Below, one piece after another: positions 2,815 through 62,650 of a stretch of 64,000 bases of DNA. The stretch's first letter is position 1. Each line of letters starts with the position of its first letter. The translations under genes were made by a program, and so were the position numbers. The notes beneath the pieces are model-generated. The model worked only from the letters and a program-made list of their open reading frames with translations. It had not been told where the DNA came from and did not search any database. Source of the DNA: Rebecca billardiae RCC1528 (lineage: Eukaryota > Protista > Haptophyta); NCBI GenBank assembly GCA_965240325.2, contig OZ251241.1, forward strand, positions 558,001 to 622,000, read 5' to 3'.

Positions 2815-2816
<2 letters not shown>

Positions 2817-2833
2817 CCGTCATCATCATCACG

Positions 2834-14056: not shown

Positions 14057-14668
14057 TCAGTCGGCCATGTCTTTGAGCGCGTTCGCCTGCATCTTCTGCC
14101 GCTCACGGATCTTTCGCATGGCCGCTGACTCGGCAACGTCCTCGTCGCCATGGCCGCCACCCTCAGCGAGGGGGTCCGTCACCGCGTACATGTCGTCCGT
14201 GCCGGCGGCCATCCGCGGCTCCGGCTTGCCCGGCTCGAGCTTGTGCTGCAGCAGCGACGAGCCGCGCTTCATGGTCTGCTCGAACATTTGCATCTTGAGC
14301 AGTGTCTCCTGTGCGCGGTCCTTCTTGGTGAGCGACTTGAGCTGGCGCGCTTTGGAGACATAGCGCGCGCGTCGAGCCTCGAGCTCGCTCTGCGAGCTGC
14401 CTCGCCCTCCGTCGGCGCCGCCGGGCTGACGGCTGGCATCGGCCCCGGCGTCGTCGTCCTCGTCGTCGCTGTCCGCTGCGCCCTTCCCACGCCACTTCCA
14501 GCCCGAGCCGCCGGGCGCGGCTGTCTGCTTGAGCTCACGCTTCAGGGCTTCGAACTCGGTGCGGCTCTCAGCCGCGCTCTGCGCAGCGCGGTGCTGCGCC
14601 TTGCGCAACTGGGCCTGCTGCCGCATCCGCTCAGCGAACTGCGCGCCCGCCTCGTCCACTTCTTGCGG

Positions 14669-14699
<31 letters not shown>

Positions 14700-20759: not shown

Positions 20760-21573
20760 GAGAGCGCGCACATTATCCTTGGCGCGGCGCTGGCCATGTC
20801 CCCCCCCCCCCGCGCGGCAGCGACGCACGGCGGGGCTTATGGGGTGCAATCGTCTGCGGTCGTGCCCGCGGCGTGCATCGTGTCTGCGGCGTCGTCAGTA
20901 TCACTATCACTTATCAGCCACTCGCAAGTGCTGCGCGGTCGATCCGCGATGCCCACAGCCCCCGCCCACAGGCACAGCACTGCTGTCGTCAGCAGCCGAA
21001 TTATGCGTGCGCAAGCAGCCAGTGTGCCACGCGCATGCATGAGACTGTCAGTCATAACATGTGACCCGCACGACGATGTCCCAACTCCCAAGTATAAGCT
21101 CCGACGGGCTGTGGCGCAGCCGGGCGGCGCCGGCGGCTGGCGGGGGCCCAGGGCCCGAGGCCGAGCCCGCCCGAGGCGGGCGAGGCCGGCGGCCGCGGGG
21201 CGGCGGTGCACGGCCTGATGGGGCTGCCACGGTCGCGGCAAAGTCGGCATCAACATCAAGGCTCAGCCGTCGTCAGGCACCGCCATGGCTCAAGTCTCGG
21301 CGGCACAGGACACGTCCAGCATGCTGGTGTCGAGGCATCGCCTGGCTCGAGCAGGCTGGCCAGCATCGCGCCACCTCTCATGGCTCGCGCTCTGCCTCGC
21401 CGTCCGTCCGTCGACCTCACCCGTCAGGGCGGCGCTCACAGCAAATGCGCCGGCAATGGAGACCAGATGCAAGAGCTGCGGTATCGGCGCGGCATCCGGC
21501 AAGCCCATCGCCGAAGCCTTGTGCAGGCGCTGCCCGTCCCATGCACGCGCGCGCAGCGCGCCATCACGTAGCT

Positions 21574-21981
21574 TCAGCCCGTCCGCAGCGGTGGCGAGAC
21601 GAGGATGACCGCATCGCCACGCACGAAGAGCATCTCCACCTGCCGCTTGGTGGTCTTGATGATCTCCTCGTATGTCTCCTCGTCGATGTCGTACGTTGTG
21701 ATTGTCTCCTCAACATCACCCATGACCATGTTCAGATGTTGGTCGAACGCCTGTGTGGGGCAGGCATTGCAGAGCGCACCGAGTCAGGGCAAATGGTGCG
21801 CAGCGCAAAGGCGGGGGTCGCGAGCGCGCACATGCAGTTTGCCACGGAGCTCGCGGTCGTGCCGAAGCTTGACGTATATCCGCTCGTCCAGACTGAGGCG
21901 AATCAGGTCGAGCGGCTCCTCCACCACCGACGTCGCGCCGCCGGGCTGTGCAGCCCCCTGCGTCGAGGACACGGCCGCCAT
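21574..21981 (-). CDS. LSM3: Sm-like protein LSm3; exons 21981-21832, 21750-21574
   Basis: [29 protein letters not shown]|[31 protein letters not shown]. Confidence 0.96.
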
Positions 21982-22179
21982 CCCGGTTGCTGGTCGCTCC
22001 GCCGAACACGCGACCGCGCGCGCGGGCTTGCGCCTCCGCCTTGTCTCGTCATCGCAGCAAGGCCCCCGCTGCCGATCGCACGGCACCGGAGCCAATCACA
22101 GCGCGAGCTCAAGCGGCGCAGCGCGAAGGACGGCGTCCCAATAATCGGAAGCCAAGCAGGAGGCGGTACCCCTGTTAGC

Positions 22180-23109
22180 ATGGCCCGGGCCGTGCCGGGG
22201 GCGGCCTCGCCGCCCATCCCTCCCTTCTGCGAAGCTGAGACGCAGACAGAGCGCGTCGATCTCTTCGAGTGCAACATCTGCCTCGACTCGGCGAACGAGC
22301 CCGTCGTCACCTTCTGCGGCCACCTGTACTGCTGGCCGTGCATCTACCGCTGGCTGCAGGTTTCGACAGCTCCCCTCTGCCCCGTGTGCAAGACGACGGT
22401 CACGCAGAAGAAGCTTGTGCCCGTGTACGGGCGAGGCAAACCGCACATGGATCCGCGTGTCTCCACCGTCGTGCCGCCCGCGCACACATCGCCGGGCATC
22501 CCGAGCCGGCCGCACGGCCGCCGGCCCGAGTCGCACAGGCGAAGCTCGTCTGGTGGCGCCGCAGGGCTGCAGCCTGGCGACGTCTTGTTACCGCCGCCGG
22601 CGTTGGCCGGTGGGCAGTCGTTCGGCCTGCTCGGGTGCGTCTCGTGCGAGTCTGCATCGCGTGCGAGTCTGCATTGCGTGCTCTGCGCGCTGCCGCCCGT
22701 GCAGCTAATCGCTGCGCGCCCGCGTCCCTCCCTCCCCGTGCCGCGCGTTGCACCCGCTCCCTGCTGCTGCTGGTGCATAGCAGTGCCAGCTGGACAGCGC
22801 ACGCCGCCGCGCCCTTTGGCGTGGGATTCGCGCCGTCGTTCGCGGGTGTTTTCCCCTTAGGATTCCAGTTTGTACGTGCACGCCCGAGCGCGCGCATCGC
22901 CAACGCGACCGGCCTCGCCTGCGACCACGGCGCGCTGACACGTGCTGCTGCGCCTGCGCGCGCCTGCGCAGATCTCGCACGTGGTGCAGCCGGGAGCGCA
23001 CAGCGGGGCAGGAGAAGCGCGCTCGCCCGAACACGCACAGCAAGCCTTCCTCTCCAGGTTGCTCTTGCTGCTCGGCTCGTTCGTCATTCTGTGCCTTCTC
23101 CTTTTTTGA
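22180..23109 (+). CDS. RNF5/RMA1-like tail-anchored RING-HC E3 ligase; exons 22180-22634, 22781-22871, 22972-23109
   Basis: FECNICLD..PVVTFCGHLYCWPCIYRWL..CPVCK..LVPVYGRG; C-terminal TM QAFLSRLLLLLGSFVILCLLLF. Confidence 0.9.
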
Positions 23110-28587: not shown

Positions 28588-28916
28588 CGACAAGAACGCC
28601 GGGCGCCAGCGCCGCTCATCAGCCACATCGCCCTCTACCAGACCATCGCCTCAAAGGGCGCTGCTCCCGGACAAACAGTCTGTCCGGGTTGTTCTTTCTG
28701 CCGCCCACTCGGCCCAGGAGATCGGTTTCCGGCGCCGGCCTCTGCCGCCTGCTTCGCCAGGCGCGGCGTGCGAGATGGCTCCAGCCAAGCTCGTCCTGCG
28801 TCGCCGGCGGCGGCGGCTCGCACGCGGGTGGCGCGTCGCGTGCACCGACCAACTATGGCCGCCGCCGGTCGGGCATCATTGAAACTAAAAGTAGTAGTGT
28901 TACATGTAGCTAGTAG

Positions 28917-31278
28917 TTAGTCGTCGCAGCAGAGCGCCTTGATGGAGGCGATCTTGTCGTCGAGTTTCATGTCCTTGCGGTGCAGCAGGTCCTGGATGGT
29001 CGGCTTGAGCTCCGGCGACTTCTTCACCGCCCACTGCAGCCGCGCGCGGGCCGCAGCACGGGCGGGGGCGGCGGCAGGTGTGGGGTGGCGCGGGGTGAGC
29101 GGCAGCGGTAGGATCGGCCGCCGCTTCAACATGCGGCCTGCCTGACGGCGGGTCAGCGCGCGTCGGAGCGCGCCCGCGCCGCACTCGCACCTGGATCATG
29201 CGGGCGGCGTACAGTGGGAGCGGCACACTGGTGCTGGGCGGCGCGGGTGTCCCGGCGCAGCGCTCAGACACAGCGGGCTGCCGCTGCGGCGGGGTCGCCT
29301 CTTCGTCCGACCGTGTCTCCTCCTCGCCGCCCTCCAGCCAGGCGGGCACGGCGGCCGCGAGCAGCGCGTGGGCCTCTCGCAGCTCGGCGGTCGCGTCGCG
29401 CGGCTCGGGGGGCGAGTGCTGCTCGGCGCTCGGCTCGTCCTGCTCCGCGAGCTGCTCGCGCCACTTGTCGACGAGCTTGCGCACGGCCCAGTTGGGCGTG
29501 TGCTCCGTGCCCACCGGCTCGTTGGTGAGCGGCGAGCGCGGCGTGTCCGTCGAGGAGAGCCACTGCAGCAGCGGCGCCTGCGAGTACGTCTGCCCATCCG
29601 CGTGCAGCAGCACGGCATCACACAGCAGCTCGTGCGTGATCGGGCAGAGCAGCTCGTCGGGGGGCTGCGCCGCGGCGACAGCCCCACCGTGCAGCACAGG
29701 CCGCACGCGCGCCGCGAGCAGGCCGCGCACGAGCTCGCGCACGTCGCCGTGCTGCCGCAGCGCGTGCAGCGCGCCGCCCTTGGCCAGGAGCTGGCTGAGC
29801 TGCGAACCGCGCGCGCGCTCGAGCGGCAGCGCGCGCAGCACGGCGCCCACCTCTGGGCCCGAGCCGCGGCGTTCGAGCCACGGCGCAAGGGCCTGCAGCG
29901 TGGTGGCCACGTCGCCCGCGCGCACGGCCGGGTGCGCCACCAGCCGCAGCATCGTCGTGGCGGGCAGCAGCTCGAACTCTTCAGACGAGCGGAGGTGGCC
30001 CAGCCAGCGCGACGCGTACTGGAAGAGCACGCCGTCGAAGGGCGCGCACTCGAGCCCGTGGGCGCACAGGCCCTCGACGGCGCGCATGAGCTCGCACAGC
30101 GCGGCGTACGTCAGCGTGGACGCGTCCGTGAACGCCGCGCCCGGCTTCACGAAAGAGAGCCTCGTGTGCCGCGCCGCCCAGTTGACGAGTGCGTTGAGCT
30201 GCAGGCGCGAGGTCGGCACCTCGACGGTCACGAGAGCGTCCAGCGTCACCGGGCTGGGTTTGTGCTGGACGGGGAAGCTGCCGATCCAAAAGATGGATGT
30301 GGGTGCCTCCTCGTCTTTGGGGCAGCAGAAGATCCCCTGGCCCTGCCATTCGAGCGTGTACGCGCGGCTGTCCACAGTGGCGCGCGCGCCGATCACGCAG
30401 TGCGGCGAGGCGTCAGGCGACAAGAACTCCACGCCCACATGCGCGTGTGGGTGGCTCGGCTCGCCCTCGCACAGCACCACGGCCTGCCAGCGACACGGTC
30501 GCCCGTGCTTGTCCTCGCCCGCGCCGAACTCGTCGCCGTGCTCCCTCGCAACGGAGGGCTCGAGCCGGTCGCACTCGACGACGCCCTGGCCGAACAGGCG
30601 CTCGCGGAGCACGTCGTGCGGCAGCTCGGCGAGGAGAGCGGCGAAAGCGTGCGCGCACAGCGCAAGCGTGCAGGGGCGGCCGAGCAGGTCGCGTACCGCG
30701 CTCAGCCTCGCCTTGCCCTCGGCATCGCCGCACGCGTCGCTCAGGATGTGCCCCACCGTGTCCGACAGCAGCTGCGACACGCCCTGGCTGGGGCTGCGCT
30801 GGGCGTACGGAGCGATCGCGTTCAACAGCCGGAAGCATGCGCCACCAAGCTTCTTTTCGAGCACCGGCAGCTGCAATTCGTCCACGGCATAGCGCACGGC
30901 GCGGTGCACATCGAGCGCGGTCGCGAGCTCGAGCAGCTCCACACCATCTCGGACCGTCATGTCGCAGTACTCGGCGTACACGTCGTCGTCATCGCCCTCG
31001 ATGGCGACGACGAGGCGACGCACCGTCTCCACGCCGCACATGCCCGGCAGCACGCACGTCTGCGACTTGGCCCCCTCGACCAGAGCACGCATCTTGGCCG
31101 AGGTGCGCGCGGCCTTGTCCCGGTTCACAGGCACGCGCACCGCCATCTCGAGCCGGGCGATCAGCACCTCCTTCGAGCCGGCGGAGGGCGCCTGCGCCTC
31201 CTTGAGCCGCGCGCGAAGCTGCTTGTTGTTCAGCGTGTGATCCACACGCGGCGCGAGCCAGAAACCCGGCGACGGCAT
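28917..31278 (-). CDS. SAP-domain / BACK-like / U-box E3 ligase; exons 31278-29191, 29033-28917
   Basis: SAP LNNKQLRARLKEAQAPSAGSKEVLIARL; U-box PPDELLCPITHELLCDAV..DGQTYS..SPLTNEP..PNWAVRKLV; phase-0 intron. Confidence 0.85.
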
Positions 31279-31841
31279 TGCGCACTTTACTCGACGGCCT
31301 GGAGGCGCGAGACCCGCTCCGCGACTCCGCGAGGCCCTCGCGGGGCAGTCCGTTGGCGCAGCGATTCTGCTCGTTCAAATTCAAAGAGACGGTGATCAAA
31401 ATAATCCATTCATCTCGCGCGTCGGGCTACCGGAGAGTGTATGGGGCCATTGCGGCAGTGGCATCCGACCTGCGCTCCGCATGACGAGTGGTGCCACGGG
31501 AGACTCAGTGTCATACCATAGTATCTCAGAGGGTAGTCACAGGCTACATGTGACAGGAGAGGCAGATGGCTGCCGATCACACCGTCAAAGAAATAAGTCC
31601 TGCTGGCCAGGCTCCACAGTACGGGCGCGGGCGTCGCGGCTGCAAGGCTGCACGACTGCACGAAGCAGTTTCACTCTCAGCCGTCCGGGCCGCACGGTCA
31701 GCCCGGCAACGTGTGTCGTGGCGCCATTTGCGGCTGAAGCGACGCGACGGGGGCGGTGACGGTACTCCCGTGAAGTCAGCACGAAGCCACAGCACCTAGG
31801 CCCGTGCCGCGCGCGTGCCGACCCCACAGCTGGACTCCGAT

Positions 31842-32423
31842 TTACGAGGAGCACATCAGGCTCTCGCGCGTGTCGACGCCGGTGGCGGGGTTCTTGCCCG
31901 ACACGTCTGGCCGCTCGCAGAGCAGCTTCGCGGAGCGTGGCGGGAGCAGCGCGTCGGAGAGGTCGGCATTCTTCAAGTCCTCCACCTCGGACACCGTCTC
32001 CGTGAAGAACGCGCCGTCGAGCCGCGCGTCCTTCAGGATCACACCCTCCAGCTTGGCGCCCTCGAGCGAGACGCCCGACATGTTGGCTCCGGTAAAGTCG
32101 GCCTTCTGCAGGTCAGCCTTGAAGAAGGAGCAGCCGCGCAGGTCGGCGCCTTTGAAGTTGGTCCCGATCGCCTCGACCTGCCTAAACTCCTTGCCCGCGA
32201 GCTTCTTTCCGCTGAAGTCTTCGCCAGAGATGGACTGTCCCGAGAAGTCCTTGCCGCCGCCGCTCACGGCGCGCGCGGCGTTCGGCCCAACGAGCAGCAG
32301 TGAGCTCGACGCCGCGGCGGTGTGCAGAAAGCGCTGGCGTGTCGTGAGCGCCCCGGGTGCGCGACGAATGCCGCTCGCCAGCCCGAGCTGGCAAGCCACC
32401 ACCAACGCTGCGCCGGGACGCAT
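31842..32423 (-). CDS. Thylakoid-lumen pentapeptide-repeat protein
   Basis: A(D/N)LXX pentapeptide repeats; C-terminal LC..GKNPATGVDTRESLMC; signal/transit leader ending in ARA. Confidence 0.9.
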   Translation of the reverse strand: MRPGAALVVACQLGLASGIRRAPGALTTRQRFLHTAAASSSLLLVGPNAARAVSGGGKDFSGQSISGEDFSGKKLAGKEFRQVEAIGTNFKGADLRGCSFFKADLQKADFTGANMSGVSLEGAKLEGVILKDARLDGAFFTETVSEVEDLKNADLSDALLPPRSAKLLCERPDVSGKNPATGVDTRESLMCSS

Positions 32424-32628
32424 GACGACGGACGGGCCTCGCGAGACTTCGCTGATGACGAGCCGCCGGACGACGATCGAGAGCGATCTCCGGGCGACCC
32501 CCGGCCGGCAAAAGCTCTGGCCAGTGTATTTTTCAATTTTTGTCGCCGGCGGCAGCCATCGCTGCGGCCAACCGTCGTCGTCGAGCAGCTCGAGCGGCGC
32601 CGGGCCGCCCTCAGAGCCGGCGCGGGCG

Positions 32629-34803
32629 ATGCTCGGAGATGGCCACGTCGACGAGTTGCTGCGGCAGATGGAGGAGCGATGCATCGCGCACATCGACGTA
32701 GACTGCTTCTACTGCGAGGTCGAGCGCCAGCGCGCGCCGCGCCTCCGCGGCAAGCCGATGGCGGTGCTGCAGTACAACCCGAGGGACCCGCGCACGATGC
32801 GAGCGGACGACGACCGCGTCATGCCCGACTCGGACGGCAGCATCATCGCGGTGTCGTACGAGGCGCGCGCGCAGGGCGTGACGCGCGTGATGCGCGGGCG
32901 CGAGGCGCGCAAGCAGTGCCCGTCCATCGTGCTTGTGCAGGTGCCCGTCTCGCACTCGAAGAGCGACCTCACGATTTATCGTGAGGCGGGCGCGCGCGTG
33001 ATCAGCGTGCTGGCGCGCTTCGCGACGTCCGTGTGCCGCGCATCGATCGACGAGGCGTACGTCGATGTCACCGCGCGCGCCGCCGAGCTCGCCGCGCGGC
33101 TGGCCTCCGGCGCCGAGCCGATTTTGGCAGCAGGCGTCGCGCCGGCCGAGCTCTCGCCCGACAGCCTCGAGTGGACGTGGGTCGCCGGCGTGGACGAGCC
33201 CGACGGCGCGGAGGTGCTCTCGCGCGCCGAGGTGCGGAACGGGCACGCGAAGGGGCTACACGCGCCCCGCCCCACACCCGCCGGCGCGGGCGCCGACGGC
33301 GCGGGCGGCGCCGCCGGCGGCGCGGACGCGGCGATATCCGTCGAAGCGGCGCGCGTCGCTCACATGGAGTCGCTCAGAGGGCGTGCCGCGCAGCAGCAGG
33401 CGGACGCGCAGGCCGAGCAGGCGCGCAGCGAGGCGGCGTCGAGCGTGAGCGCGAGCGCCCAGTGGTGGCGCCGCCCCCTCGACGAGTGGCGCCCCGCCGA
33501 GCTCCTGCTCGCCGCGGGCGCGCGCGTCGTGCACAGCATGCGCCGAGCTGTGCTGCTCGAGCTCGGCTTCTCGTGCAGCGCGGGCGTGGCGCACTCGATG
33601 ACGCTGGCCAAGCTGGGCTGCTCGATGCACAAGCCGGGGATGCAGACCGCGCTGCCGTCGGCGGCGATGGCGCGGCTGCTCCACTCCATGCCCATCGAGC
33701 GCGTCAAGGGGCTCGGCGGCCAAGGCCTCGGCCGCCAGCTGCGCGAGGAGCACGGCGTGCGCACGCTCGGCGACCTGGCCAGTTGGCCTCTGGACAGGCT
33801 GGTCGCGCGCTTCGACGCAAAGTCGACGGCGAAGGTGAGCCGCGGCTCGGGCGTGTGGCTGTACCGCATCGCGCGCGGGATTGATCTCGACGAGGTGAAG
33901 GACGAGCCGCTCCCCGGCAGCCACGGCGTGGGCAAGAACTTTGTCCGCTCGGCGACGGGCGCGCTCACGAGCGCGCGCGAGCTGCGCCACTGGCTGGGCG
34001 AGCTGGCCGCGCAGGTGCTGGAGCAGCTGCGCGAGGAGCTGGACGTGCACGAGCGCGTGGCGACGCGGCTCACGGTGCACTGGGCGAACGACGCGGCCGC
34101 GGCGGTGTACGCCACCGCCGGCGGCACCCGCTCGCGCAGCCTCAAGCTCAGCCGGCCGTACTCGCACGAGCGCATCGTGGCCGAGTGCTGCGCGTGCGTC
34201 GAGCGCGAGACGGCCGGCCGGCCGATGCGCGTGGGCATGCTCGGCCTGATCGCGTCGGGGATGGAGGCGCTGCCCACGGGCAACGCGCGCCTCACCGACC
34301 TCTGGACGGCCAAGCCGGCCGCGGACGCGGACGCGCCCGGCGAAGCGGGTGGTGACGGCGACGCGCCCGATGCGGTGGCGGCTGCCGCGCCAGCCGCCGC
34401 CACCGCGCTGCAACTCACCCTGGACGCGACGTCGTGCCGCGCAGACGTCGCACCGCCCGTCCCGCCAATGCCGGCGCGAGTGGATGCGCCTGTCTCTCCC
34501 GAGGCGGCGGCCACAGACGCAGATGCGGACGGCGCTGATGAGCCGGCGGAGGCGCGACCCGCCAAGTACGTTCGTCTCGCCGTCGAGGAGATTGAGCCGA
34601 GCGTCCTCGCCGAGCTGCCCGCGGACGTGCGGCGCGAGCTGCTCGAGGAGATCCGTGGCGCCGAGAGGAGCTCGGTGGGCGCGGCAGGGCATGCGCAACG
34701 AGGCAAGACCGGGTGCGGCTCGGCATCTAGCAGCGCCATCGCCCGGGGCCGCGCGCCCGCAGCAGGCTCGGCGAGCATCGCTCGCTTCTTCGTCCGGAAG
34801 TGA
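32629..34803 (+). CDS. POLH: DNA polymerase eta (Y-family)
   Basis: HIDVDCFYCEVE, IIAVSYEAR, RASIDEAYVD, CSAGVAHSMTLAKL..HKP..QT; UBM IEPSVLAELPADVRRE; C-terminal PIP-like SIARFF. Confidence 0.92.
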   Translation: MLGDGHVDELLRQMEERCIAHIDVDCFYCEVERQRAPRLRGKPMAVLQYNPRDPRTMRADDDRVMPDSDGSIIAVSYEARAQGVTRVMRGREARKQCPSIVLVQVPVSHSKSDLTIYREAGARVISVLARFATSVCRASIDEAYVDVTARAAELAARLASGAEPILAAGVAPAELSPDSLEWTWVAGVDEPDGAEVLSRAEVRNGHAKGLHAPRPTPAGAGADGAGGAAGGADAAISVEAARVAHMESLRGRAAQQQADAQAEQARSEAASSVSASAQWWRRPLDEWRPAELLLAAGARVVHSMRRAVLLELGFSCSAGVAHSMTLAKLGCSMHKPGMQTALPSAAMARLLHSMPIERVKGLGGQGLGRQLREEHGVRTLGDLASWPLDRLVARFDAKSTAKVSRGSGVWLYRIARGIDLDEVKDEPLPGSHGVGKNFVRSATGALTSARELRHWLGELAAQVLEQLREELDVHERVATRLTVHWANDAAAAVYATAGGTRSRSLKLSRPYSHERIVAECCACVERETAGRPMRVGMLGLIASGMEALPTGNARLTDLWTAKPAADADAPGEAGGDGDAPDAVAAAAPAAATALQLTLDATSCRADVAPPVPPMPARVDAPVSPEAAATDADADGADEPAEARPAKYVRLAVEEIEPSVLAELPADVRRELLEEIRGAERSSVGAAGHAQRGKTGCGSASSSAIARGRAPAAGSASIARFFVRK

Positions 34804-51747: not shown

Positions 51748-53319
51748 TCATACCATCAGACGCCTCCAGCCGGCACGCGACGCCAGCAGCGGGTCGGTCT
51801 CGTCAACTGGTGGCTCCTCGTCCGAGAGCCCACACGTACGCAGAAGACGGCCCGTCGATTGGATCAGGCACATGACAGCCGCGTGCGCGAGCCCACGGAC
51901 GATGTGCACCGCCGCCGCCACCGCGCAGATGGCTGCGAGCAGCTGCGCGCGAGAGAAAGTGACCACCTCGTCGGTGGTGAGCACGTCCGTCGTGGCCCAG
52001 CGCAGCTCCACGTCGACGAGCCCGAGCAGCGCGCCGTCCGGTCGACTGTCGTACGAGAAGGGCGCGATCATCTGCGTGGCCGAAGTCGAGAGGACGAACG
52101 AGTCCACCGCACGTGCCGGGTCGGGCGCGCTCTCGGCGGCGGCCGTCTCAAGGCGACGACTGCGCTCCACGCGGGTGGGCTGCCCTGGGGCCACAGCCGC
52201 GTCTGGCGTGGTGCGCGTGTCGGTGGTGCTCTCTGGGCCGAGCAAGATCTCAAGCGCCGTCCCGAGCTGCGCGCCCAGCTTCGATAGCCGCAGCATGTGC
52301 TCGGGCGGGGCGCGTGACAGCCATCGCTCCTTGTGCAGGCGCACGGCCGTGCTGAACGAGGGCTGCAGCGCGCGCAGGCTGGGCGGCGGCACGGCTTCGC
52401 CACCGCGCCGAAAGGTCGACCACGCGTCGTCAGAGAGCAACCATAGGTCGACGCCCATGCTCGCAGGATCGAGCACGCCGGGATGCTCGCGGCTGGCCGG
52501 GGCGGCCCCAGGCATGCGCGCCTGCCCAGCCGGCACCGCGCCGCCTGTCACTCGCACCGTCAACGTGAGCGCCTCATAGGCCGTCGTGGGCCCGAGGGCC
52601 GACGGGGCACCGAGGCAGCTGAGATTGTGGGCATGGAAGGGCTCCATCAATAGAGCGCCGATCTCCGCGTCGGACGCGCCCTTGCAGCTGCGCTGCGCCC
52701 CGTCAGCGGCGGTGCGCTCGCACCGAACCAGCTCGAGCGCGTCGGCTGGCGCGTGCGGGCTGCAGAGCACCACATTTGGGAAGGCGAGCAATGGCGGGTG
52801 CGTGACGCGCACGTGCGTGGCCGGGTGCACGATCGCAAAGTTGTACGCGTCGATCAGAGACCCGACGAGGACGAGGGTGACGGCGAGCTGGGCGCAGAGC
52901 AGCAGCAGGCCCACCACCAGTGAGGTCAGCGCGCACGCAGGCGATGCCGACGTGCCAGCCGCTCGCGCTCCGCCGCGCGCTGCGGCGGGCACCGGTGGAG
53001 GTGGCGGCTGCACGGGTACGCGTACGGCGATGTCGCGCCGCGTGTCTGGCACGGCAGTCAGGAGCGGCGGAGCTGGTGATGGTCGCGGCCGAGCATCCGC
53101 CCGCGCCTCGCCCGTGCTCCAATGGTGGGCCCAGTCAGCCGAAGGCCAGCTGCTGTTGGAGAGCGTGCCGTCGTAGGTCGGCGAGCATTCGCCGCTGCAG
53201 GCGCCGCAGACTTTGGGGTCGTTTGCGGAAGGCCACTCGCGCGGCAGCGCGCGACGCCTTTGCCCTTTGGGCGTCCGGTCCAGGTCCAAGTAATTCCCGG
53301 CGCTCGCGCCGGACGCCAT
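51748..53319 (-). CDS. Two-TM membrane protein resembling the DEG/ENaC channel superfamily
   Basis: TM1, then YNFAIVHPATHVRVTHPPLLAFPNVVLCS (cf. FPAVTxCN). Large loop, then DVELRWATTDVLTTDEVVTFSRAQLLAAICAV (cf. pre-TM2/TM2). The 5' part may contain an intron. Confidence 0.65.
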   Translation of the reverse strand: MASGASAGNYLDLDRTPKGQRRRALPREWPSANDPKVCGACSGECSPTYDGTLSNSSWPSADWAHHWSTGEARADARPRPSPAPPLLTAVPDTRRDIAVRVPVQPPPPPVPAAARGGARAAGTSASPACALTSLVVGLLLLCAQLAVTLVLVGSLIDAYNFAIVHPATHVRVTHPPLLAFPNVVLCSPHAPADALELVRCERTAADGAQRSCKGASDAEIGALLMEPFHAHNLSCLGAPSALGPTTAYEALTLTVRVTGGAVPAGQARMPGAAPASREHPGVLDPASMGVDLWLLSDDAWSTFRRGGEAVPPPSLRALQPSFSTAVRLHKERWLSRAPPEHMLRLSKLGAQLGTALEILLGPESTTDTRTTPDAAVAPGQPTRVERSRRLETAAAESAPDPARAVDSFVLSTSATQMIAPFSYDSRPDGALLGLVDVELRWATTDVLTTDEVVTFSRAQLLAAICAVAAAVHIVRGLAHAAVMCLIQSTGRLLRTCGLSDEEPPVDETDPLLASRAGWRRLMV

Positions 53320-53414
53320 TGTGCTGCATTCCCGCTGCCGCCGGCCGCCGCCTCGCCGTTGAATCCGCTTCTTAAAAGAACTCAGCTGGCTTACTTTTAG
53401 TGAGCCACCGGCCG

Positions 53415-56184
53415 AGGCCACTCCACCGAAATCGGCCGCCGTCTGGCATCCCAGGTCGCACTGCGTCTGGGATCTTGATCAGATCGATGCCAGACGGCGT
53501 CTGGGGTCGTCTGGGATCGGTGCGCGCGGCACCGTGAGCGCGTTTCGCGAGCGTCTCTCGTGTCTGCGCGGGTGGCGCGCACTTTCGTCAGGTGCGCCCA
53601 ACCCATTCGACCTCGCGCGCCGCTGGCTTCGCGTCTCTCCGCCGCTCGAACCGCTCGCCATGGGCGCGCGACTGTGCTGTTGGCCTGTTTGCCGCCGAGG
53701 CCAGCTGCGAGCGCGCACTTGCGGGCACAAGCTCGGCTGACGGCGCGTTGCGGGTGCGCTGCGCGCGGATCATGCGCACGTGTTCCGCCTAGCCCCGACC
53801 GTCGGTCGCGCACGCGGAACACGGCCCACTTGAGCGCGCGCTCAAGCTGCCGCGAGTGCCATGCAGAGGCCGTGACGATGCCACCAGCGCGGGCGAGCCC
53901 ACGCGCCGGTAGTGCGCGCGCCGAGCTCGTGCGACGAGCTGTGAGGTCGTGAATGACCGTCCACTCCCGCCATGGACAGTCCGTGGCCTCGCCCGCGCCA
54001 GCAGCTCGAGGCAACGACGCGCCGCGCCGCCGCCACCCTTCCGGGGCGCAAGCTGGGCAGGAGTGCAGCCGTTGCAGCGGGCACGGGACGGCTGCGCGCC
54101 ACTCCGCGAGCACGAGGTCGGCGGCACGGGAGGCGTCGGTGGCGCGGGTCGATTGCGCACCATCGCCCCGGCTTCGGCCATCCTGCTGGCGTCACAGACA
54201 GCACACGAGCGCTGACCGTCGTGACACCGTAGTAGCTCAACCCCCGGCTCCGTTCTCAGTCAATGTGGCGCTCCTGCGATTGCAGCAGGCGCAGCCACTA
54301 CCGTAGGCATGGGCACTGTCATCAGAGCAGCTCCTAACCTGAGAGCGGCAGGTATGTCACATCAGCAGGCACTCGATCGTGAACCGCATCCAGATTGCGG
54401 GCACGGGCATCGTTGACGACGGCGAGAGGCGCTGGTTGCGTTGGTACCCACGTGCACTCTTGACAGCTGCGCTTGCTTGCGGCGCGCGCTAAGCAGTAAG
54501 TTGAATGGTGCCGCCTTGGCAGCCACTGGCTCAGCCTTGGTCTTGTGCAGGGCAGTCTTTGCCTTCGCTGCCGTGTGGCGAGAAGGTTGATTGTGTACGC
54601 CGCGTCGGGCTGTGCCTTTTCTTCACGCCCGGAGCGCAGCAGGCACTTGGCCCAGGGCTGCGCGGCCGGTGCTGTGCATGCGCCCGCACCAGTGATCGCG
54701 ATACTCTCGGTACGGCAGGTGGCGCTGAGCCTGGAGGGCGCAGCGGCGGCGCGTTCATTTGATACCGGGACTTCCAGCGGCCGCGACACATCGAGCGCAG
54801 GCGGCTACGCAAAGACCGTAAGCCATCGATGCCGCGTCCAAGGCGCGCGAGGCGGTCGGCTGGCAGCGGCTGCGAGAGCGCACCATGCCGTGATACACGA
54901 AGCGTTGTCGCCGCCGTGGTGCCAATGACGCCGTTCACTAGTGTGCCATCGCCGCACCGTCGTAGTCAGGGGCAGCAAAACAAGGCTGATGAGAGCTCTG
55001 GCTCATGAGATCAAAGGCTCAACCATAGGGCGCGAGCGCAATGTAGCACAGCCTTTGCTGCTCCAGGCCTTCCTGCGCGCAGTAGCCATCGCAGCAGGTG
55101 TCGATCAAGTCTGCCAAGCGCTCGCGTGCCGCTGCTCGCGTGCTTGCGGATGCTCACGTCTTGCATCGGTGAGCGGGTGCTCCGTCACATCACACCGTCG
55201 CTGCTTGCGCGTGGCGCACGCAGCCAGCCCGTACCAAACACGCGTGCACGATCAAATTGCACGCATGAACACAATCAGCTTGAGCATCTCAGTGGCAAGT
55301 CACTCGCGACAGCCCCAAACAAGGGCGTCAGCGCTGCCTGGCGCGTGATTGAGCTACCAGCACCAACCTGACAGCTTCTACGGTATCACGACGGTCAGCG
55401 CTCGTGTGCTGTCTGTGACGCCAGCAGGATGGCCGAAGCCGGGGCGATGGTGCGCAATCGACCCGCGCCACCGACGCCTCCCGTGCCGCCGACCTCGTGC
55501 TCGCGGAGTGGCGCGCAGCCGTCCCGTGCCCGCTGCAACGGCTGCACTCCTGCCCAGCTTGCGCCCCGGAAGGGTGGCGGCGGCGCGGCGCGTCGTTGCC
55601 TCGAGCTGCTGGCGCGGGCGAGGCCACGGACTGTCCATGGCGGGAGTGGACGGTCATTCACGACCTCACAGCTCGTCGCACGAGCTCGGCGCGCGCACTA
55701 CCGGCGCGTGGGCTCGCCCGCGCTGGTGGCATCGTCACGGCCTCTGCATGGCACTCGCGGCAGCTTGAGCGCGCGCTCAAGTGGGCCGTGTTCCGCGTGC
55801 GCGACCGACGGTCGGGGCTAGGCGGAACACGTGCGCATGATCCGCGCGCAGCGCACCCGCAACGCGCCGTCAGCCGAGCTTGTGCCCGCAAGTGCGCGCT
55901 CGCAGCTGGCCTCGGCGGCAAACAGGCCAACAGCACAGTCGCGCGCCCATGGCGAGCGGTTCGAGCGGCGGAGAGACGCGAAGCCAGCGGCGCGCGAGGT
56001 CGAATGGGTTGGGCGCACCTGACGAAAGTGCGCGCCACCCGCGCAGACACGAGAGACGCTCGCGAAACGCGCTCACGGTGCCGCGCGCACCGATCCCAGA
56101 CGACCCCAGACGCCGTCTGGCATCGATCCCAGACGCAGTGCGACCTGGGATGCCAGACGGCGGCCGATTTCGGTGGAGTGGCCT
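53415..56184. mobile_element. 2.8-kb foldback element with ~820-bp near-identical TIRs (53415-54237 / 55373-56184)
   Basis: The arms are reverse complements apart from an 11-bp indel and a few substitutions; the ORF track shows identical mirrored ORFs. CCGGCCG direct repeat at 53408-53414 and 56185-56191. Confidence 0.92.
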
Positions 56185-56330
56185 CCGGCCGGAAGGATGG
56201 TCGAGCTACTCACAATGACAGTTAGTCCAGTAGCGCTCGCGCCTTGCACGAGCTCGACGGGCGGGCGGTCGAAGGCCTTGGAGCTGCCCACCTTTGCTCG
56301 CGCGCTCGACATTCGCGTAGGCCGCGAGGC

Positions 56331-59300
56331 ATGCCTCACACGTCGGCGGTCGCGACTACGATGCTGGGCACTAGGCGCACAAAGCAAGCCTCGCGCCGAA
56401 ACTTGTCGTTCGGCGAGAAAGGCTCCGTGAATCCCGCGAGCCTGCGCTACCCGGAGGTGGCGGAGGATGAGACGCTCGTGCCCGTGCGCAAGGTGCTGCA
56501 CGACTTCGAGCAGCGCGAGGGCGCGCGCGGCTTCATCACGTACACGATCTTCTTCGCCATCTACTTTGCACTCAACGCCTACCGCTTCGACGCGAGCGAG
56601 GGCCGCCGCACCATCACCTGGTTCAACGAGGCGCTCAAATCGCAGTACGACCTGGTCGCTGACGAGACGAACGGCTGGTGCGCGTGGGACGCCGGCGGGC
56701 TCGAGTGCTACGAGCCGTACCTCGAGCGCGCGGACATCGACGGCCTCGAGCACTTCCTCGAGTCCGACCTCACCCAGGTCGTCTCCGGCATCCTCGAGTA
56801 CTGCGACGAGTGCCTGATCGGGATGAGCGAGGTCTCCAAGGACCTGCGCGACACGCCGCTCTCGCAGTTCCTCTGCGTCGACTTCGAGACGCTCCCCGAG
56901 ACGGCGTTCGCCATCGGCGCGGGGAAGGCCACCTTCAGCAAGCGCGACTGCAAGAAGGTGGACGACGACTTCAAGTCCTCGCCCTCGCCGCTCGAGGCGC
57001 CGTGCTGCCACGACGCGTCCGTGCGGTACGCGTCACAGGCCCTGATGGCCACCTTCGAGACGCAGGGCGAGTGGGCGGCGGTGAAGGGGCTGACGTACGC
57101 CGATCTGCAGCCGAGCAAGAGAACGCGCAAAGCGTTGAAGGACTACACCGCCCGCGCGCTCGAGAACGACGCGAACAAGAACACGCTCATCCAGATTGTG
57201 ATCTTGCGCGGCGGCCACGCTACCGGCATCGTGCGCGCGGCCGCGCAGAGCGCGCGTGCGCGCGCGCGCCCGCGCAGCGCGCCCCCGTGGGCGCGCGGCG
57301 CTGATTCCGGGCGTGCGCGCGTGCATGCGCCGTGCGCGCGCGCAGGTCTTTGGCGGCACCTTCGCCGACCGGAAGTTCCTCAAGGAGCGCGTCGAGCCGC
57401 ACGTGCGCTTCTGGTCTTACTTTTACGACGACGGCTCTGTCGACGAGATCATGCTGGCGTGCATGATGGGCACGTGGATCCTGTCGCTCGTGCACGAGCT
57501 GCTCGAGATCTGGAGCAGCGCGTACCGGCCGGGCAGCCTGCTGTCGGCGGTGCTGCGCCCGTTCATGCTCTTCATCGAGTGGCCCTCCATCATCGCGCCC
57601 ATCCTGCTCGAGGCCACGCACACCGCGGTCGAGCTGGGCGACTACGTGTTCCTGGTATCGATGCTTGAGCTGCTCATGTTCATGCGCGTCTTCCAGGAGG
57701 GGCAGGTCGTGCCGCCGTTCGCGCTGATCGGTGCGCGCGGCGCGCGCGCCGGCGCCGCCCCGGCTTGCGCGCGCTCACGCGCTCCCTCTCGCTCGCGCGC
57801 CCGCCGCTCGCGCGCGCCCGCTCGCGGCCTTGGCGATCGCGCCGCGCGCTCTGCTGATCTGCACGGGCGGCAGTGCGCACGCTCATCAACGCGGGCAAGC
57901 AGCTCGTCATGTTCACGATCGCGATGGGCGCGTCCGTGCTCGTGCTCGCGTCGATCAACATGCAGCTCTTCGGCAACTTCCACGACGGGTACGCCGACCT
58001 CGGCGACGCGCTCACCTCGCTCTTCACCTCGGGCATGATCACCGGGCAGGAGTTGGACGACGATTTGATTTCGTACGCGCACCCGGAGGCGACCGCGATG
58101 CACTTTGTCGTCAACCTGTTTCTCTTCCTGATCCTCGCGCAGTTCTTCATCGCGATCCTGGTGGGCGCGTTCGACTCGACGCGCGAGGCGGAGGAGGAGC
58201 GGCGGCAGGACCGCGCGCTGCCCGAGGGCTTCAAACGGCGGCACCGCCCGCCGCCGCTGAGCGCGTGCGCGCACGTGCTCCGTGAACTGCGCTACCTCTG
58301 CACGTACCACACGCGGCCCGAGCTGTTCGTGCCGCGCGTGGTGCGCGGGCTCAAGGCGGTGGTGGACGAGGCGGACGCGCGCGCACAGGTGCTGGCGGAC
58401 GCGCTCGACCGCAAGTTCGAGCCGCAGCCGCTGATGGTCACGCGCTCGCAGCTCGAGCCGCAGCTCGGCGAGGCCGTGAGCGCGCTGCTGCTTGAGTGGT
58501 ACGGCGCCGTGTGCACGCGCGAGCTGAGGGACGCGCGCCACTTGCTAATGCTCGCGCTCGAGGGCGAGCCGGGGGCGGAGCCGGTGCCGGCGCTGGAGGA
58601 GGACGAGGAGTGGCGCGCGCACGCCCGGCTCACAAAGGGCCGCGGCGAGTCCATCGGCACGCAGACCGACTTCACCCTGGCCGACGCGCGCTACGCCGCC
58701 GCCGCCGGCCCGGGTGGCATCAGCGCCGACTGCGAGCTGCTGGCGCTGAGCGCGTCGGTGCGAGCGGACGCGCCGCGCGGCAGAGCGGAGCGCTCTCCGG
58801 CGGGCGCCGACGGGCTGGGCAGGGACGCGCCCAAGGGGGCAGCCGCACGGCCGCACGCCCAGGGCGACCAATACCCGGCCGAGCCCGCGCACGCCGCCTC
58901 GGCCGGGCCGGCTCGCAACGGCGGCGCGGCAGCGGACAGGGCAGCCACCAAATCGCCCGTAGACGGCGGCCCGCCTGGGGCGGCCGCGCGCGCCGACGGC
59001 GGCGAGCATGGCGCCGATCCGCCCTCGCGGCCGTCGCGGGGGAGCGAGCCTGTGCGCGATTGGGCGGACGTCCCCGCTCGCAACGACCGCTCGCACCTGC
59101 CGCCCATCGAGCAGCAGGAGCCAGCCGCTGCGCGCGCGCCCACGCCGCCCGAGTACGCGCGCGCCAACGGCCACGGCGGCGCTGACACGCCGCAGCCGTC
59201 GGGCGCCGAGAGGCACCAGCCAATCGGCGCCTCGCCACCGGGGAGCGTCCGCCCTGCGGAACACGGCGCGGCCGAGCGCGCAGGCAGTCCTCCCAGTGAG

Positions 59301-59435
59301 AGCCGGCGGCGTGAGCCGCGCGAGCCCGTCGTTCGCGTCCAGGTTGCGCGGCGAAGCGGCAGCGGCGCCGGCAGCGCCAGTCACGCCGGAACGTACCCTT
59401 ACGGCGGGCAGCACTGGTCGACATCATCACGGTGA
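56331..59435 (+). CDS. Polycystin-2/TRPP-like cation channel; exons 56331-57230, 57346-57730, 57874-59435
   Basis: S1 GFITYTIFFAIYF; long Cys-rich S1-S2 loop; S5-pore-S6 VRTLINAGKQLVMF..LFG..YADLGDALTSLF..LFLILAQFFIAILVGAF; low-complexity tail. Confidence 0.85.
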
Positions 59436-60731: not shown

Positions 60732-62650
60732 TCACAACGGCTCGAGGTCGATGTACCTGAACTCGGGGTACTTGGAGCGGATGAGCGCCTCCAGCCTGTC
60801 CACCTCGAGGCCGAGCATCAGGTAGAGGTGCTGGCTGCACCGCCGCGTCACGCGCCGCGCGTCTGCGTCCGTCTCGACCGCGGAGAGCGAGACGCGCATG
60901 TCCTGCAGGTTCGTGTGCAGCGCTGGTGCACGCACGGCGGAGCGCAGGCGGGCGCGAGCCGAGGCGCACGGTACCCGTGAGCGCGCGACGCGCAGACCGG
61001 CTGGGTGAGCGGCAGCGCGCCGCGGTGCCGCGGCCCGCGCGCGCCGCCGGCCGGCCGGCGGGCTTGGGGCATTGTGCCGCGCGCGCGCGCGCGCACCCAA
61101 GTAGCGGTCCGCGATGGCGACGGCGTTGAAGTGCACCTCCGCCTTGAAGCGCGCGACGCCGGGCGAGACCATCACGCTCTTCACGTCGTGCAGCGAGAGC
61201 ACCGCCGGGTCCGCGCGCAGCAGCGACTGCACCTCGTGCGTGCGCTTGGGCGCGATCGCCTGCCCAATCAGAACCTCGCGATTCTTCTGCACAATCATCC
61301 ACGCGACGCCGCCGAGCATGCCCGAGATGACGAGCGAGCCCGCCGCGTCCCACCGCGGGTCGCCTGTCGCCACCGAGAGCGCCATTGCGCTGATCGCCAC
61401 CCCGATCCCCGCGACCGCCGCGCTGTCCTCGAGGAACACGCCCACGTTGAGCGGGTCGGGTGCGTACCGGATATAGTGCCACGTGCGCATGCCAGACTTG
61501 GCCGCCTCGCGCCTGATCTCGTGCAGCGCGACGAGCATGGAGTAGCCGTCGAGCAGCCCGGCGAGCGCCAGCGTGCCCAGCCCCACGCCCAGGTTGTGCA
61601 GCGGCTCCGGGTGCATCAGCGCCTGGATCCCGTGGTACGACGTCACCCCGCAGCCGAGGAAGAAGATCCCCACGCCCGACATGAGCGACCACACAAACTG
61701 CTCGTTCGCATACCCGTACGGGTGCTTCTGGTCCGCCTCGCGCTGGGAGCGCTCGAGGCCGATGAAGAGGAGCAGCTGGGCGCGGGGCGGGGACCCGCCG
61801 CATGCATGCATGCGCGCGCGGCGCGCGCGGTGCGTGCGAGAGCGGCGGCGCTCAGCGCACAAGCCGTGCGGATGGGCTGGATGGTCCGCCGCGCCCAGCG
61901 GCGGGCCAACGCGCGCCGCGCGCGCGGTGGCGCGGCGCACACCTGGTTGAAGAAGTCGGCGACCGAGTGCACGGCCTCGGCGAACATGGCGCCCGAGCCC
62001 GTCGCGAGGAACGCCCCGCCCTTCGCCACCGCGATGATGGCGTTGCACACGAGCGCCGAGTACACGGCGTTGGCGCCGGTCGGCACCGGCGTGTTTGCGC
62101 GCTTGAGCCGCATGCCGATGAAGTACCGCTGCCGGCCGTGGAGCCGTCTTCTGCGCGTGCGCTCGCGCTGCTCCTTCACGCTCGCGATCGTGTCCATCGA
62201 GCCCCACTTCCCCAGGGCCGCGCGCACCACGTCCATCCGGAAGTAGAGCGGCATCGTCGCCGCAGACGCGTATGGGCTCGCCTTGAGCAGGTGCGGGAGG
62301 GAGGCGAGGTCGCGTATGCCGAGCATGTACTGCGTGCGCGCCTCCTGCTGCGTGAGCGTCTGCGCCTCGCGCCAAAACGTCACCGACGCCTTGTCGCCCG
62401 TGCCCAGCCGCTGCTCGAGGTAGCCCTGGTGCGTCTTCCAGCGCAGCACGTCGAGCACGCGCGCCGGAGGCGTCCACTCCTTCCACGCGCTCAGCTCGGC
62501 GGCGGGGGGCGAGGTGCACAGCGAAGCCCTCGGGCCGCTACTCCGCGGTGCGTACGGTAATGGCGCACCGGCGAGCGTCCAGCGCGTCGCGCACCATGCC
62601 GCGCCGCGCACGGGGAGCGCTCGCGCGCCGATCCCCACGGGATGCGCCAT
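60732..62650 (-). CDS. ZnT9/SLC30A9-like cation diffusion facilitator; exons 62650-61943, 61775-61097, 60922-60732
   Basis: N-terminal XPA-like segment (EARTQYML..SPY..LYF..ALGKWGS), SGAMFAEAVHSVADFFNQ|LLL..HPYGY, VFLEDSAAV, FKAEVHFN, EVDRLE..YIDLE. Confidence 0.93.

Follow-up and report, generated by a model that had tools for sequence, protein, structure and literature searches.

The minus-strand gene at positions 51748-53319 of the window (the whole 64-kb stretch of DNA analyzed here) appears, on balance, to encode one subunit of a probable homotrimeric channel with two transmembrane helices, sharing the fold of PAC, ASIC and ENaC and forming a new family. The predicted structures of both of its subfamilies match, among the matches listed, only the PAC/TMEM206 and DEG/ENaC channels. 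What is established is the gene, its conservation and its predicted fold.

Gene and family

The ORF listing places a minus-strand open reading frame of 557 residues, counted from a GTG, at 51748..53421. Its first ATG opens a single-exon coding sequence of 523 residues whose start and stop were both verified in the sequence, and the span given in the first-pass annotation is exactly this ATG-to-stop frame. An inverted repeat lies 95 nt upstream. GC by codon position is 0.71/0.59/0.81 over the whole ORF and ~0.72/0.58/0.85 from 52970 to the stop, a coding signature in a genome of ~68% GC. The parts of the gene, all on the minus strand, are as follows.

51748..53319, minus strand: single-exon coding sequence of 523 codons, with the stop at 51748-51750 and the first ATG at 53319
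52942..53319, minus strand: N-terminal cytosolic region, residues 1-126, rich in Pro, Ala and Arg and probably disordered (from the translation)
53281..53292, minus strand: Tyr10-Leu-Asp-Leu13, a YxxL-type sorting motif (from the sequence)
52828..52941, minus strand: helix 1 (TM1 and an extension), model residues 11-48, equal to protein residues 127-164 (from hydropathy and AlphaFold)
52762-52827, minus strand: post-TM1 motif His-Pro-Ala-Thr ... Phe-Pro-x-x-Val-x-Cys, HPATHVRVTHPPLLAFPNVVLC (from the sequence and alignment)
51952..52827, minus strand: extracellular or luminal β-rich domain, model residues 49-340 (from modeled secondary structure)
51952..52029, minus strand: long β-hairpin leading into helix 2, model residues 315-340 (from the model and alignment)
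51856..51951, minus strand: helix 2 (TM2), model residues 341-372 (from AlphaFold and alignment)
51751..51855, minus strand: C-terminal cytosolic tail with an acidic stretch and E-x-x-x-L-L (from the sequence)

The gene is real and conserved. An exhaustive HMMER scan of 1.84e9 proteins returned no more than six relatives, each from a similar microbial eukaryote with a high GC content (marine protists); the best of them, P0001, is homologous over the full length of the protein (E 2e-44, 40% identity). The family divides into two subfamilies, one comprising the query, P0001 and P0006 and the other, the sister subfamily, including P0008; one of the six relatives is an MMETSP transcript of the sister subfamily. 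Conservation falls on the helices and strands, not on the loops, in the alignment of relatives.

The same genome holds one paralog (G000:C30) of two exons, with a 160-nt GT..AG intron and a GC3 of 0.98, and P0008 shares its splice. The paralog's exons (L003:2761-4458 and L003:4622 onward) were searched and aligned separately, as unspliced pieces. Genome searches starting from the protein, from the two paralog exons and from the family profile put the family at two genes here; a match on C20 (E 0.06), interrupted by an internal TGA, was judged to be due to chance and not a third gene. A word search with the single protein gave no match, and one with the family alignment found the paralog's own second exon (P0011) alone. 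A three-row MAFFT alignment that included the paralog was misaligned in its middle and was left out as a profile. Within the window, an Rfam search gave no match, and no counterpart exists for the neighbors of P0001, one of which is a DSPc phosphatase. The genome has at least 59 matches to light-harvesting proteins; the host is therefore an alga, as had been proposed.

Predicted structure

The structural models rest on a nine-row alignment with about five independent sequences and are of moderate confidence. The AlphaFold model of the query has a pLDDT of 62.6 and a pTM of 0.53, and that of the sister subfamily (P0008) a pLDDT of 61. Roughly 95-110 residues fall below a pLDDT of 50 in both models; in that of the query, the core that finds matches is predicted better, at 70-80. 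The palm β-sheet and two-helix architecture, on which the first-pass annotation had staked its assignment, are present in the models, and the comparison it had called for with ASIC1, ENaC and PAC returned PAC/ASOR/TMEM206 and ASIC/ENaC/FaNaC chains among the matches listed.

In a Foldseek search of the PDB, the top eight matches of the query are PAC/ASOR/TMEM206 chains (best 7sqf_A, E 1.7e-10, TM by target 0.46), ASIC ranks next (E ~1e-8), and the best 50 listed of the 90 matches at E≤1e-3 are all PAC or DEG/ENaC chains. For P0008, the top 20 matches are all PAC (best E 4e-11, TM by target up to 0.56). VIA-align gives Z-scores of 13-16 overall, with PAC and ASIC/ENaC tied. The query aligns with ASIC 2qts_B at Z 14.8 (256 aligned residues, rmsd 8.0 Å) and with PAC 7sqg_A at Z 14.0 (245/270 residues, 9.3 Å), and its ectodomain aligns with ENaC 9btu_C at Z 13.9 (173 residues, 3.7 Å); the P0008 model reaches 15.8 with ENaC, 15.6 with ASIC and 15.0 with PAC. 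Taken over whole chains, the rmsd is 7-10 Å, and the global TM-scores, at 0.3-0.56, are low.

Other searches point to the same group. A Foldseek-independent scan of 48,161 chains is headed by eleven DEG/ENaC or PAC chains (Z 11.2-14.4), and the next match, at Z 8.9, aligns only helical hairpins. The first two rows of an ESM-feature search are TMEM206 clusters (0.92, sharing 196 and 195 of 256 features), at a recognition value of 1816, which is below the 2300 mark. TMEM206 also occupies the first row of an Atlas shape search, and an alignment-free ESMFold2 run yields the same match family as both AlphaFold models.

Judged by its sequence, the protein belongs neither to PF15122 nor to PF00858. 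A Pfam search of the query protein at E≤10 found no channel family, including PF00858, PF15122 and P2X (PF00864), and PF15122 is absent from all nine family members at the same threshold; ERGIC_N and COPIIcoated_ERV were likewise unmatched at E≤10. A CRPA match on the ORF (E 0.029) was attributed to chance, and weak HemY_N and SLATT_1 matches on helix 2 of P0003 and P0009 to chance driven by the helix. The best ASC score in the family falls on TM1 and the post-TM1 region of the paralog (E 0.36, 10.3 bits against a cut-off of 23.6, profile positions 23-75). Searching PDB sequences with phmmer gave no match, and the family profile found neither PAC nor ASIC among all PDB sequences, with one chance match at E 0.85. 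Run against the whole genome, PF00858 had no match at E≤10 and PF15122 none either, the latter being a weak blank because the controls too matched nowhere.

Topology and conserved motifs

The protein is oriented N-in/C-in, with a cysteine-containing, β-rich outer domain between its two helices. Two hydrophobic segments exceed 1.5 on the Kyte-Doolittle scale (ORF residues ~156-199 and ~486-520). The first-pass annotation had described two transmembrane segments around a loop of ~250 residues: the two helices hold, but the loop between them is longer, at 292 residues in the model, ~100 of which are low-confidence or disordered. It had also quoted the motifs after TM1 and before TM2, both of which are present and, like both helices, kept in the paralog and the six database relatives.

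Basic residues of the N-terminal region precede helix 1, and its YLDL motif recurs in the N-terminal fragment P0006 at residues 6-9. Helix 1 carries the invariant residues Gln28 and Tyr43. At the junction that follows, the query, P0001 and P0006 have His-Pro, whereas the sister subfamily has Asn-Pro. In the post-TM1 motif, P50, A51, F64, P65, V68 and C70 are invariant; its second half reads F-P-N-V-V-L-C-S in the query and F-P-H-V-V-V-C-N in the paralog, with F, P, V and C invariant in the family. The outer domain contains four invariant cysteines (C70, C84, C96 and C119) and an N-L-S sequon (52618-52626, minus strand); the sequon of P0001, N-V-S, adjoins a conserved cysteine.

The hairpin forms the family signature E-L-R-W-x-(S/T)-T-(D/T)-V ... 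F, in which L323, W325, T328, V330 and F339 are invariant in 7/7 sequences, and VELRW...EVVTFSRAQLLAAI directly precedes helix 2. Helix 2 is continuous in the model (341-379) and has two invariant residues, Gln343 (51943-51945) and Arg359 (51895-51897; 7/7 sequences). Helix 2 (searched over protein residues 451-495) lacks G-x-S, in keeping with the earlier remark that a GAS/GSS filter is not evident, and His-Gly is absent from the whole protein of 523 residues. The tail ends in R-A-G-W-R-R-L, which resembles R-A-G-Y-L-R-L of the paralog.

Three-copy model

Trimer modeling, which had been proposed as a check, gave a three-copy model that passes its controls (ipSAE 0.48, against 0.00 for the best control). 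In this model, helix 2 surrounds a central axis and helix 1 packs against helix 2 of the neighboring copy. The predicted interface comprises residues 342-357 of helix 2 in self-contact, residues 35-46 of helix 1 and strands 51-56 and 333-340, with residues 343, 346, 347, 350 and 353 of different copies touching on the axis. At least 55% of contacts are common to the three-copy runs, and the partner pLDDT is at least 53. The tool's mark was calibrated on two copies, not three (reached by 21/30 same-chain pairs and 0/23 single chains), and the pass may reflect memory, of which the tool warns for proteins that resemble solved complexes.

Alternative explanations

The region is full of long overlapping ORFs on both strands, as would be expected if the frame were merely a chance opening in GC-rich DNA and no gene at all. 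However, its codon-position GC pattern is of the coding type, a full-length ortholog (E 2e-44), a paralog and a sister-subfamily transcript exist, and the cysteines, the motifs and both termini are conserved; for practical purposes, the conserved homologs refute this reading. Should the gene be real and the fold an artefact of modeling, the product would be an orphan two-helix protein. The alignment is indeed shallow (nine rows, about five independent sequences), the models have a pLDDT of 61-63 with ~95-110 residues below 50, and the sequence-based searches (Pfam, and the family profile against the PDB) lend the fold no support. Yet two models of targets that are only 32% identical agree with the ESMFold2 run on the match family, the matched core has a pLDDT of 70-80, and a large gap separates the PAC and DEG/ENaC rows from the rest of the 48,161-chain scan, so that we consider an artefact very unlikely.

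Two other readings accept the fold, and we regard each as improbable. The protein could truly belong to the DEG/ENaC superfamily, as a very divergent cation channel, and not to a separate PAC-like family. The highest VIA-align Z-scores are those for ASIC/ENaC (14.8 for the query and 15.8 for the sister subfamily), the sister subfamily superposes at 3.1-3.3 Å with 16-19% identity over 173-180 ectodomain residues, and F-P-x-V-V-x-C-(N/S) after TM1 resembles the DEG/ENaC consensus F-P-A-V-T-x-C-N. The only weak Pfam signal, ASC, covers that same stretch of the paralog (E 0.36), and homologs from heterokont protists are on record (PMC10507113). On the other hand, PF00858 is unmatched by the query and in the genome (E≤10), His-Gly and G-x-S are both missing, helix 2 is continuous with an invariant Arg, only four cysteines are conserved, coverage is ~55-60% of the ASIC/ENaC chain versus ~90% of PAC, and PAC comes first in Foldseek for both subfamilies. 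Thus, of the original proposal of a non-animal DEG/ENaC or PAC-like channel, the fold survives and membership of DEG/ENaC by sequence does not, lacking PF00858, His-Gly and G-x-S; the PAC-like alternative fits better in size and Foldseek rank. The fold could also belong to a two-pass protein that is no channel and whose β-rich luminal domain has another role, for example that of a surface receptor or of a cargo receptor of the ERGIC/Erv41 type. The Atlas shape search lists ERGIC_N/COPIIcoated_ERV (TM 0.35-0.38) with scores near the TMEM206 row, as well as unnamed fungal, plant and ciliate clusters near the TMEM206 score, and COPIIcoated_ERV clusters appear in the ESM-feature list at 0.76-0.77. 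However, in the scan of the PDB made independently of Foldseek, no chain outside DEG/ENaC and PAC scores above Z 8.9 and the lower rows are helical hairpins, the three-copy model places helix 2 on a common axis with the invariant polar residues Q343 and R359, and ERGIC_N and COPIIcoated_ERV are unmatched in Pfam (E≤10).

Possible function and meaning

PAC carries an acid-activated, outwardly rectifying Cl- current. Its anion selectivity is set by a lysine in a continuous helix 2, and its H98 lies at the interface of TM1 and the ectodomain (PMC9351481). In the algal channel favored here, ions would be conducted through a pore lined by helix 2. The invariant Arg359, also in a continuous helix 2, may play the part of the PAC lysine, in which case the pore would favor anions. 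Similarly, the His-Pro between helix 1 and the ectodomain, present in the query subfamily only, might contribute to proton sensing like His98 of PAC, which is paired with an acidic pocket. When residues are counted back from where the aligned ranges end, Arg359 falls ~3 residues from the PAC lysine position; this equivalence and that of the junction His (model H49, protein His165) with H98 are positional estimates only. Endocytosis of human PAC is driven by Y10xxL13 (PMC7869721), and the N-terminal YLDL may direct the algal channel into the endocytic pathway; we infer this link to PAC sorting with caution because the motif is short.

A bolder reading, which we hold tentatively and consider rather doubtful, is that the family, restricted to algae, forms a third branch, older than the metazoans, of an ancient superfamily that also gave rise to PAC/TMEM206 and DEG/ENaC, and that it serves at the algal surface or in endomembranes as an anion channel regulated by pH. 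If so, PAC would gain relatives outside animals, and it would become testable whether both animal families go back to one ancestor. About equally distant from PAC and DEG/ENaC and bearing traits of each, the algal family would be a natural outgroup, and it would offer a compact, sequence-unrelated scaffold for asking how one fold selects anions or cations. The protein would also be a candidate for a role in how a marine alga handles acid or chloride.

Comparison with known channels

P2X (PF00864) is likewise a two-helix trimeric channel. A P2X cluster ranks 97 in the ESM-feature list (0.76), no P2X chain is found among the top 50 rows of each structural search, and Pfam gives no match.

DEG/ENaC channels have the fold predicted for the algal protein (Z 13-16), and their ectodomain cores superpose on the algal models at 3.1-3.7 Å. 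Common to both are two helices arranged N-in/C-in, a strand running straight into helix 2 and a trimer, modeled here, in which helix 2 lines the axis; the algal motif after helix 1 may correspond to the F-P-x-V-x-x-C-N-like motif of DEG/ENaC. Unlike DEG/ENaC, the algal family has no PF00858 match, no His-Gly and no G-x-S (GAS), and helix 2 is unbroken. The algal ectodomain is much smaller, with ~55-60% of ASIC/ENaC residues partnered, and has four conserved cysteines in place of the many disulfides of DEG/ENaC. Outside animals, DEG/ENaC homologs are known from heterokonts and Tunicaraptor, as a few heterokont and filasterean-related sequences (PMC10507113). Since non-animal DEG/ENaC proteins have thus been reported, the algal protein is not the first of these, and what is notable about it, as a divergent algal member was expected to be, is a new family with this fold.

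PAC is the best Foldseek match of both subfamilies (1.7e-10 and 4e-11), and ~90% of its chain aligns with the query model. The likeness of PAC to ASIC/ENaC is itself known at the level of structure only (PMC9351481). Shared with PAC are the small β-rich ectodomain, the continuous helix 2, the modeled trimer and the N-terminal YxxL at residues 10-13. The conserved basic residue of helix 2, which is Arg in the algal family and Lys in PAC, in an approximate register, may be a further parallel, as may, in the query subfamily only, His-Pro at the junction of helix 1 and the ectodomain. Sequence similarity to PAC is not detectable, identity in structural alignments being 10-17%, and unlike PAC the algal family has four conserved cysteines, F-P-x-x-V-x-C after helix 1 and long disordered loop inserts. 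TMEM206 is reported only from vertebrates and one hemichordate and has no paralogs (PMC6663466), whereas the present family is algal and has two; a literature search found no earlier report of PAC-like proteins in protists. On the bolder reading above, the algal family would combine a DEG/ENaC-like motif after TM1 with the compact ectodomain, continuous TM2 and conserved basic pore residue of a PAC-like channel.

Gene, coding signature and surroundings

The window has a GC content of ~68% and is crowded with long overlapping ORFs, so ORF length alone is no proof of a gene. From ~52970 to the stop, the studied frame has a codon-position GC of 0.72/0.58/0.85, which is a coding signature. The first ATG of the ORF, at 53319, gives a 523-residue product and matches the extent of 51748-53319 assigned in the first-pass annotation. 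The N-terminus shares a YLDL with the related fragment P0006, and the C-terminus an R-A-G-(W/Y)-x-R-L with the paralog, supporting both this ATG as the start and the annotated stop.

Features of the window
14057-15730, minus: cyclophilin-domain protein
21061-22860, plus: RING-finger protein
28900-31278, minus: SAP plus U-box protein
31804-34803, plus: Rev1-type Y-family polymerase (IMS, HhH, IMS_C, UBM)
51748-53421, minus: ORF of the studied gene, from the ORF listing
53414-53474 and 56125-56185: outer 61-nt arms of the inverted repeat
53482-54237 and 55373-56128: main 756-nt arms of the same repeat (perfect, 100%)
56244-57668, plus: 474-aa ORF upstream of the 520-aa ORF
57873-59435, plus: divergent neighbour, 520-aa ORF with a weak Ion_trans match (PF00520, E 0.0023, profile positions 120-240) at its start
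60732-62519, minus: cation-efflux (CDF) transporter

The surrounding ORFs code for eukaryotic proteins, including the Rev1-type polymerase with UBM, the U-box/SAP protein, the cyclophilin and RING fingers; these ORFs and that of the CDF transporter are long and apparently lack introns. The light-harvesting chlorophyll-binding family has at least 59 matches in the 72-Mb assembly, so the host is an alga, as had been guessed. The inverted repeat (53414-56185 overall, its arms enclosing 1135 nt) comes within ~95 nt of the ATG at one end and within ~60 nt of the next gene's ORF at the other, occupying the upstream region shared by the studied gene and its divergent neighbour. It may be a foldback element of very recent origin; otherwise it is a palindrome produced by the assembly as an artefact. 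The 474-aa ORF has no Pfam match; together with the 520-aa ORF it possibly represents a multi-exon cation-channel gene, head-to-head with the PAC-like gene.

Relatives and conserved residues

The gene is conserved, and a single paralog occurs in the genome, at G000:C30. The paralog has a GC3 of 0.98, and its two exons flank a 160-nt GT..AG intron that lies within a (GC)n-rich stretch. The exons were searched and aligned separately throughout, and the joined product was not used. The paralog's ectodomain has an Ala-rich insertion of ~100 residues.

Parts of the paralog, in locus L003 (G000:C30:1176000-1184000)
2761-4458: exon
4461-4620: intron
4622-5137: exon

Scanned exhaustively with HMMER, 1.84 billion cluster representatives yielded only six relatives. 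They originate from Logan, JGI/IMG and an MMETSP transcript, and the contigs have a GC content of 73%. The subfamily of the studied protein has one full-length ortholog among them, P0001 (469 aa, E 2e-44, 40% identity), and three fragmentary members, P0004, P0005 and P0006. P0002/P0008 and P0003 belong to the paralog's (sister) subfamily, and the exon junction of P0008 is the one inferred for the paralog. In the nine-row alignment, helices and strands are conserved, and the loops are variable and of low complexity. Invariant residues (model numbering) comprise Q28, Y43, P50, A51, F64, P65 and V68 in helix 1 and the stretch after it; four cysteines, C70, C84, C96 and C119; and G127, P128, Y132, R140, V141, W177, L323, W325, T328, V330, F339, Q343 and R359.

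Topology and sequence-based assignment

Two helices flank the protein's outer domain. The ORF, its coding signature, the hydrophobic segments and the two motifs quoted in the first-pass annotation, one present after the first segment and the other before the second, confirm the two-transmembrane gene described there. The loop between the segments, put at ~250 residues, is in fact 292 residues long, ~100 of them disordered in the model. An N-x-S sequon beside C119 in the studied subfamily, basic residues at the cytosolic ends of the helices and the conserved cysteines fit an N-in/C-in topology, which would place the loop outside.

Family assignment by sequence methods fails. Pfam gave only chance matches for the studied family, phmmer and the family profile found nothing among PDB sequences, and the PF00858 and PF15122 profiles had no match across the whole genome. 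The only suggestive match, to ASC (PF00858) at E 0.36, covers the paralog's helix-1/post-helix-1 stretch (profile positions 23-75); it is correctly located but far below threshold. Helix 2 lacks G-x-S, in line with the earlier remark that no GAS/GSS filter was evident, and His-Gly is absent from the whole protein. The protein thus lies outside the sequence definition of DEG/ENaC (no PF00858 match, no His-Gly, no G-x-S) and also outside that of PAC (PF15122).

Predicted fold

Structure comparison clearly assigns the predicted model to the PAC/ASIC/ENaC fold, supporting the channel-fold interpretation first proposed. AlphaFold2, run on the family alignment, gave a model of residues 1-407 (window 51751-52971; pLDDT 62.6, pTM 0.53) with a long helix 1, a beta-rich domain and a long hairpin running directly into a continuous helix 2. 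A Foldseek search of the PDB gave 90 matches at E<=1e-3. PAC/ASOR/TMEM206 chains take the first eight places (top E 1.7e-10, TM by target 0.46-0.47); ASIC, FaNaC and ENaC-type chains come next, at ~1e-8. The best 50 of the 90 are all PAC or DEG/ENaC chains. In VIA-align, where Z differences under 1 count as ties, the values for ASIC1, ENaC and PAC are tied.

VIA-align comparison of the model
ASIC1 (2qts_B): Z 14.8, 256 aligned residues, rmsd 8.0 Å
ENaC (9btu_C): Z 13.9, 173 aligned residues, rmsd 3.7 Å
PAC (7sqg_A): Z 14.0, 245/270 aligned residues, rmsd 9.3 Å

In a scan of 48,161 representative chains that does not rely on Foldseek, ranks 1-11 (Z 11.2-14.4) belong solely to DEG/ENaC and PAC, and Z then falls to 8.9 with helical hairpins. 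The sister subfamily replicated the result: for P0008:85-500 (pLDDT 61), the best 20 Foldseek matches are all PAC (4e-11, TM by target <=0.56), then ASIC, and VIA gave ENaC Z 15.8 (rmsd 3.3 Å, 180 residues, 16% identity), ASIC 15.6 and PAC 15.0. Two softer lines agree. An ESM-feature search put TMEM206 clusters on top (0.92, 196/256 features common) at a low recognition value of 1816, and row 1 of an Atlas shape search is a TMEM206 cluster, with similar TM-scores for unnamed fungal, plant and ciliate clusters, an ASC cluster and ERGIC/Erv-type proteins. Clusters as near in shape as TMEM206's come from Mucoromycota (277 and 483 aa), Streptophyta (470 aa) and ciliates (PF27811 Y80K_N); further unrecognised two-helix proteins of the same or a related fold may exist across eukaryotes.

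Trimer model and proposed function

Three copies of model residues 30-362, run in ESMFold2 with no alignment, gave ipSAE values of 0.48, 0.48 and 0.51 versus 0.00 in three controls. In calibration, 21 of 30 proteins whose solved structures are one-chain pairs passed the test's mark, against 0 of 23 with single-chain structures; three copies differ from that calibration, and a pass for something that resembles solved complexes may reflect structures already learned by the model. The runs share at least 55% of contacts (pLDDT 53-55). Helix 2 lies on the axis of the modelled trimer: the confident inter-copy contacts are those of helix-2 residues 343, 346, 347, 350 and 353 against each other, helix 1 (residues 35-46) packs against the neighbouring copy's helix 2, and strands 51-56 and 333-340, which join the helices to the ectodomain, are also in contact. 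ASIC and PAC pores have the same arrangement.

The protein would be expected to form an ion-conducting pore. Anion selectivity in PAC is set by a lysine in helix 2, which, unlike that of ASIC, is continuous (PMC9351481). Helix 2 of the studied protein is likewise continuous, has no GAS belt and carries the invariant Arg359, one turn below a polar residue (His in the studied subfamily, Asn in the sister subfamily). With the PAC precedent, these features favour an anion-conducting pore, a reading we hold at somewhat under even chances. PAC H98, at the helix-1/ectodomain junction, participates in proton sensing (PMC9351481); the junction is His-Pro in the studied subfamily and Asn-Pro in the sister subfamily, and His-Pro is a lead for pH gating, albeit an improbable one. 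PAC gets to endosomes via Y10xxL13 (PMC7869721), and Y10-L-D-L13 in the studied protein, with YLDL at residues 6-9 of P0006, suggests endocytic cycling from a motif of only four residues.

Comparison with PAC and DEG/ENaC

DEG/ENaC homologs outside animals have been published (PMC10507113). PAC was reported without homologs beyond vertebrates and one hemichordate (PMC6663466); a literature search for PAC-like proteins in algae found no report. The evidence is purely in silico. The protein resembles PAC in size, continuous helix 2, putative basic pore residue and Foldseek rank. Its DEG/ENaC-like traits are the F-P-x-V-x-x-C-(N/S) motif after helix 1, a tentative likeness, and the slightly higher Z-scores of DEG/ENaC chains, with low-rmsd ectodomain cores. 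Of the original label, 'DEG/ENaC (or PAC-like)', the second half is the better description, and DEG/ENaC membership falls away. In predicted shape and probable working the protein is like PAC and DEG/ENaC, yet it stands outside both sequence definitions, and we class it as a new family with the PAC/ASIC/ENaC fold, about equally far from PAC and DEG/ENaC.
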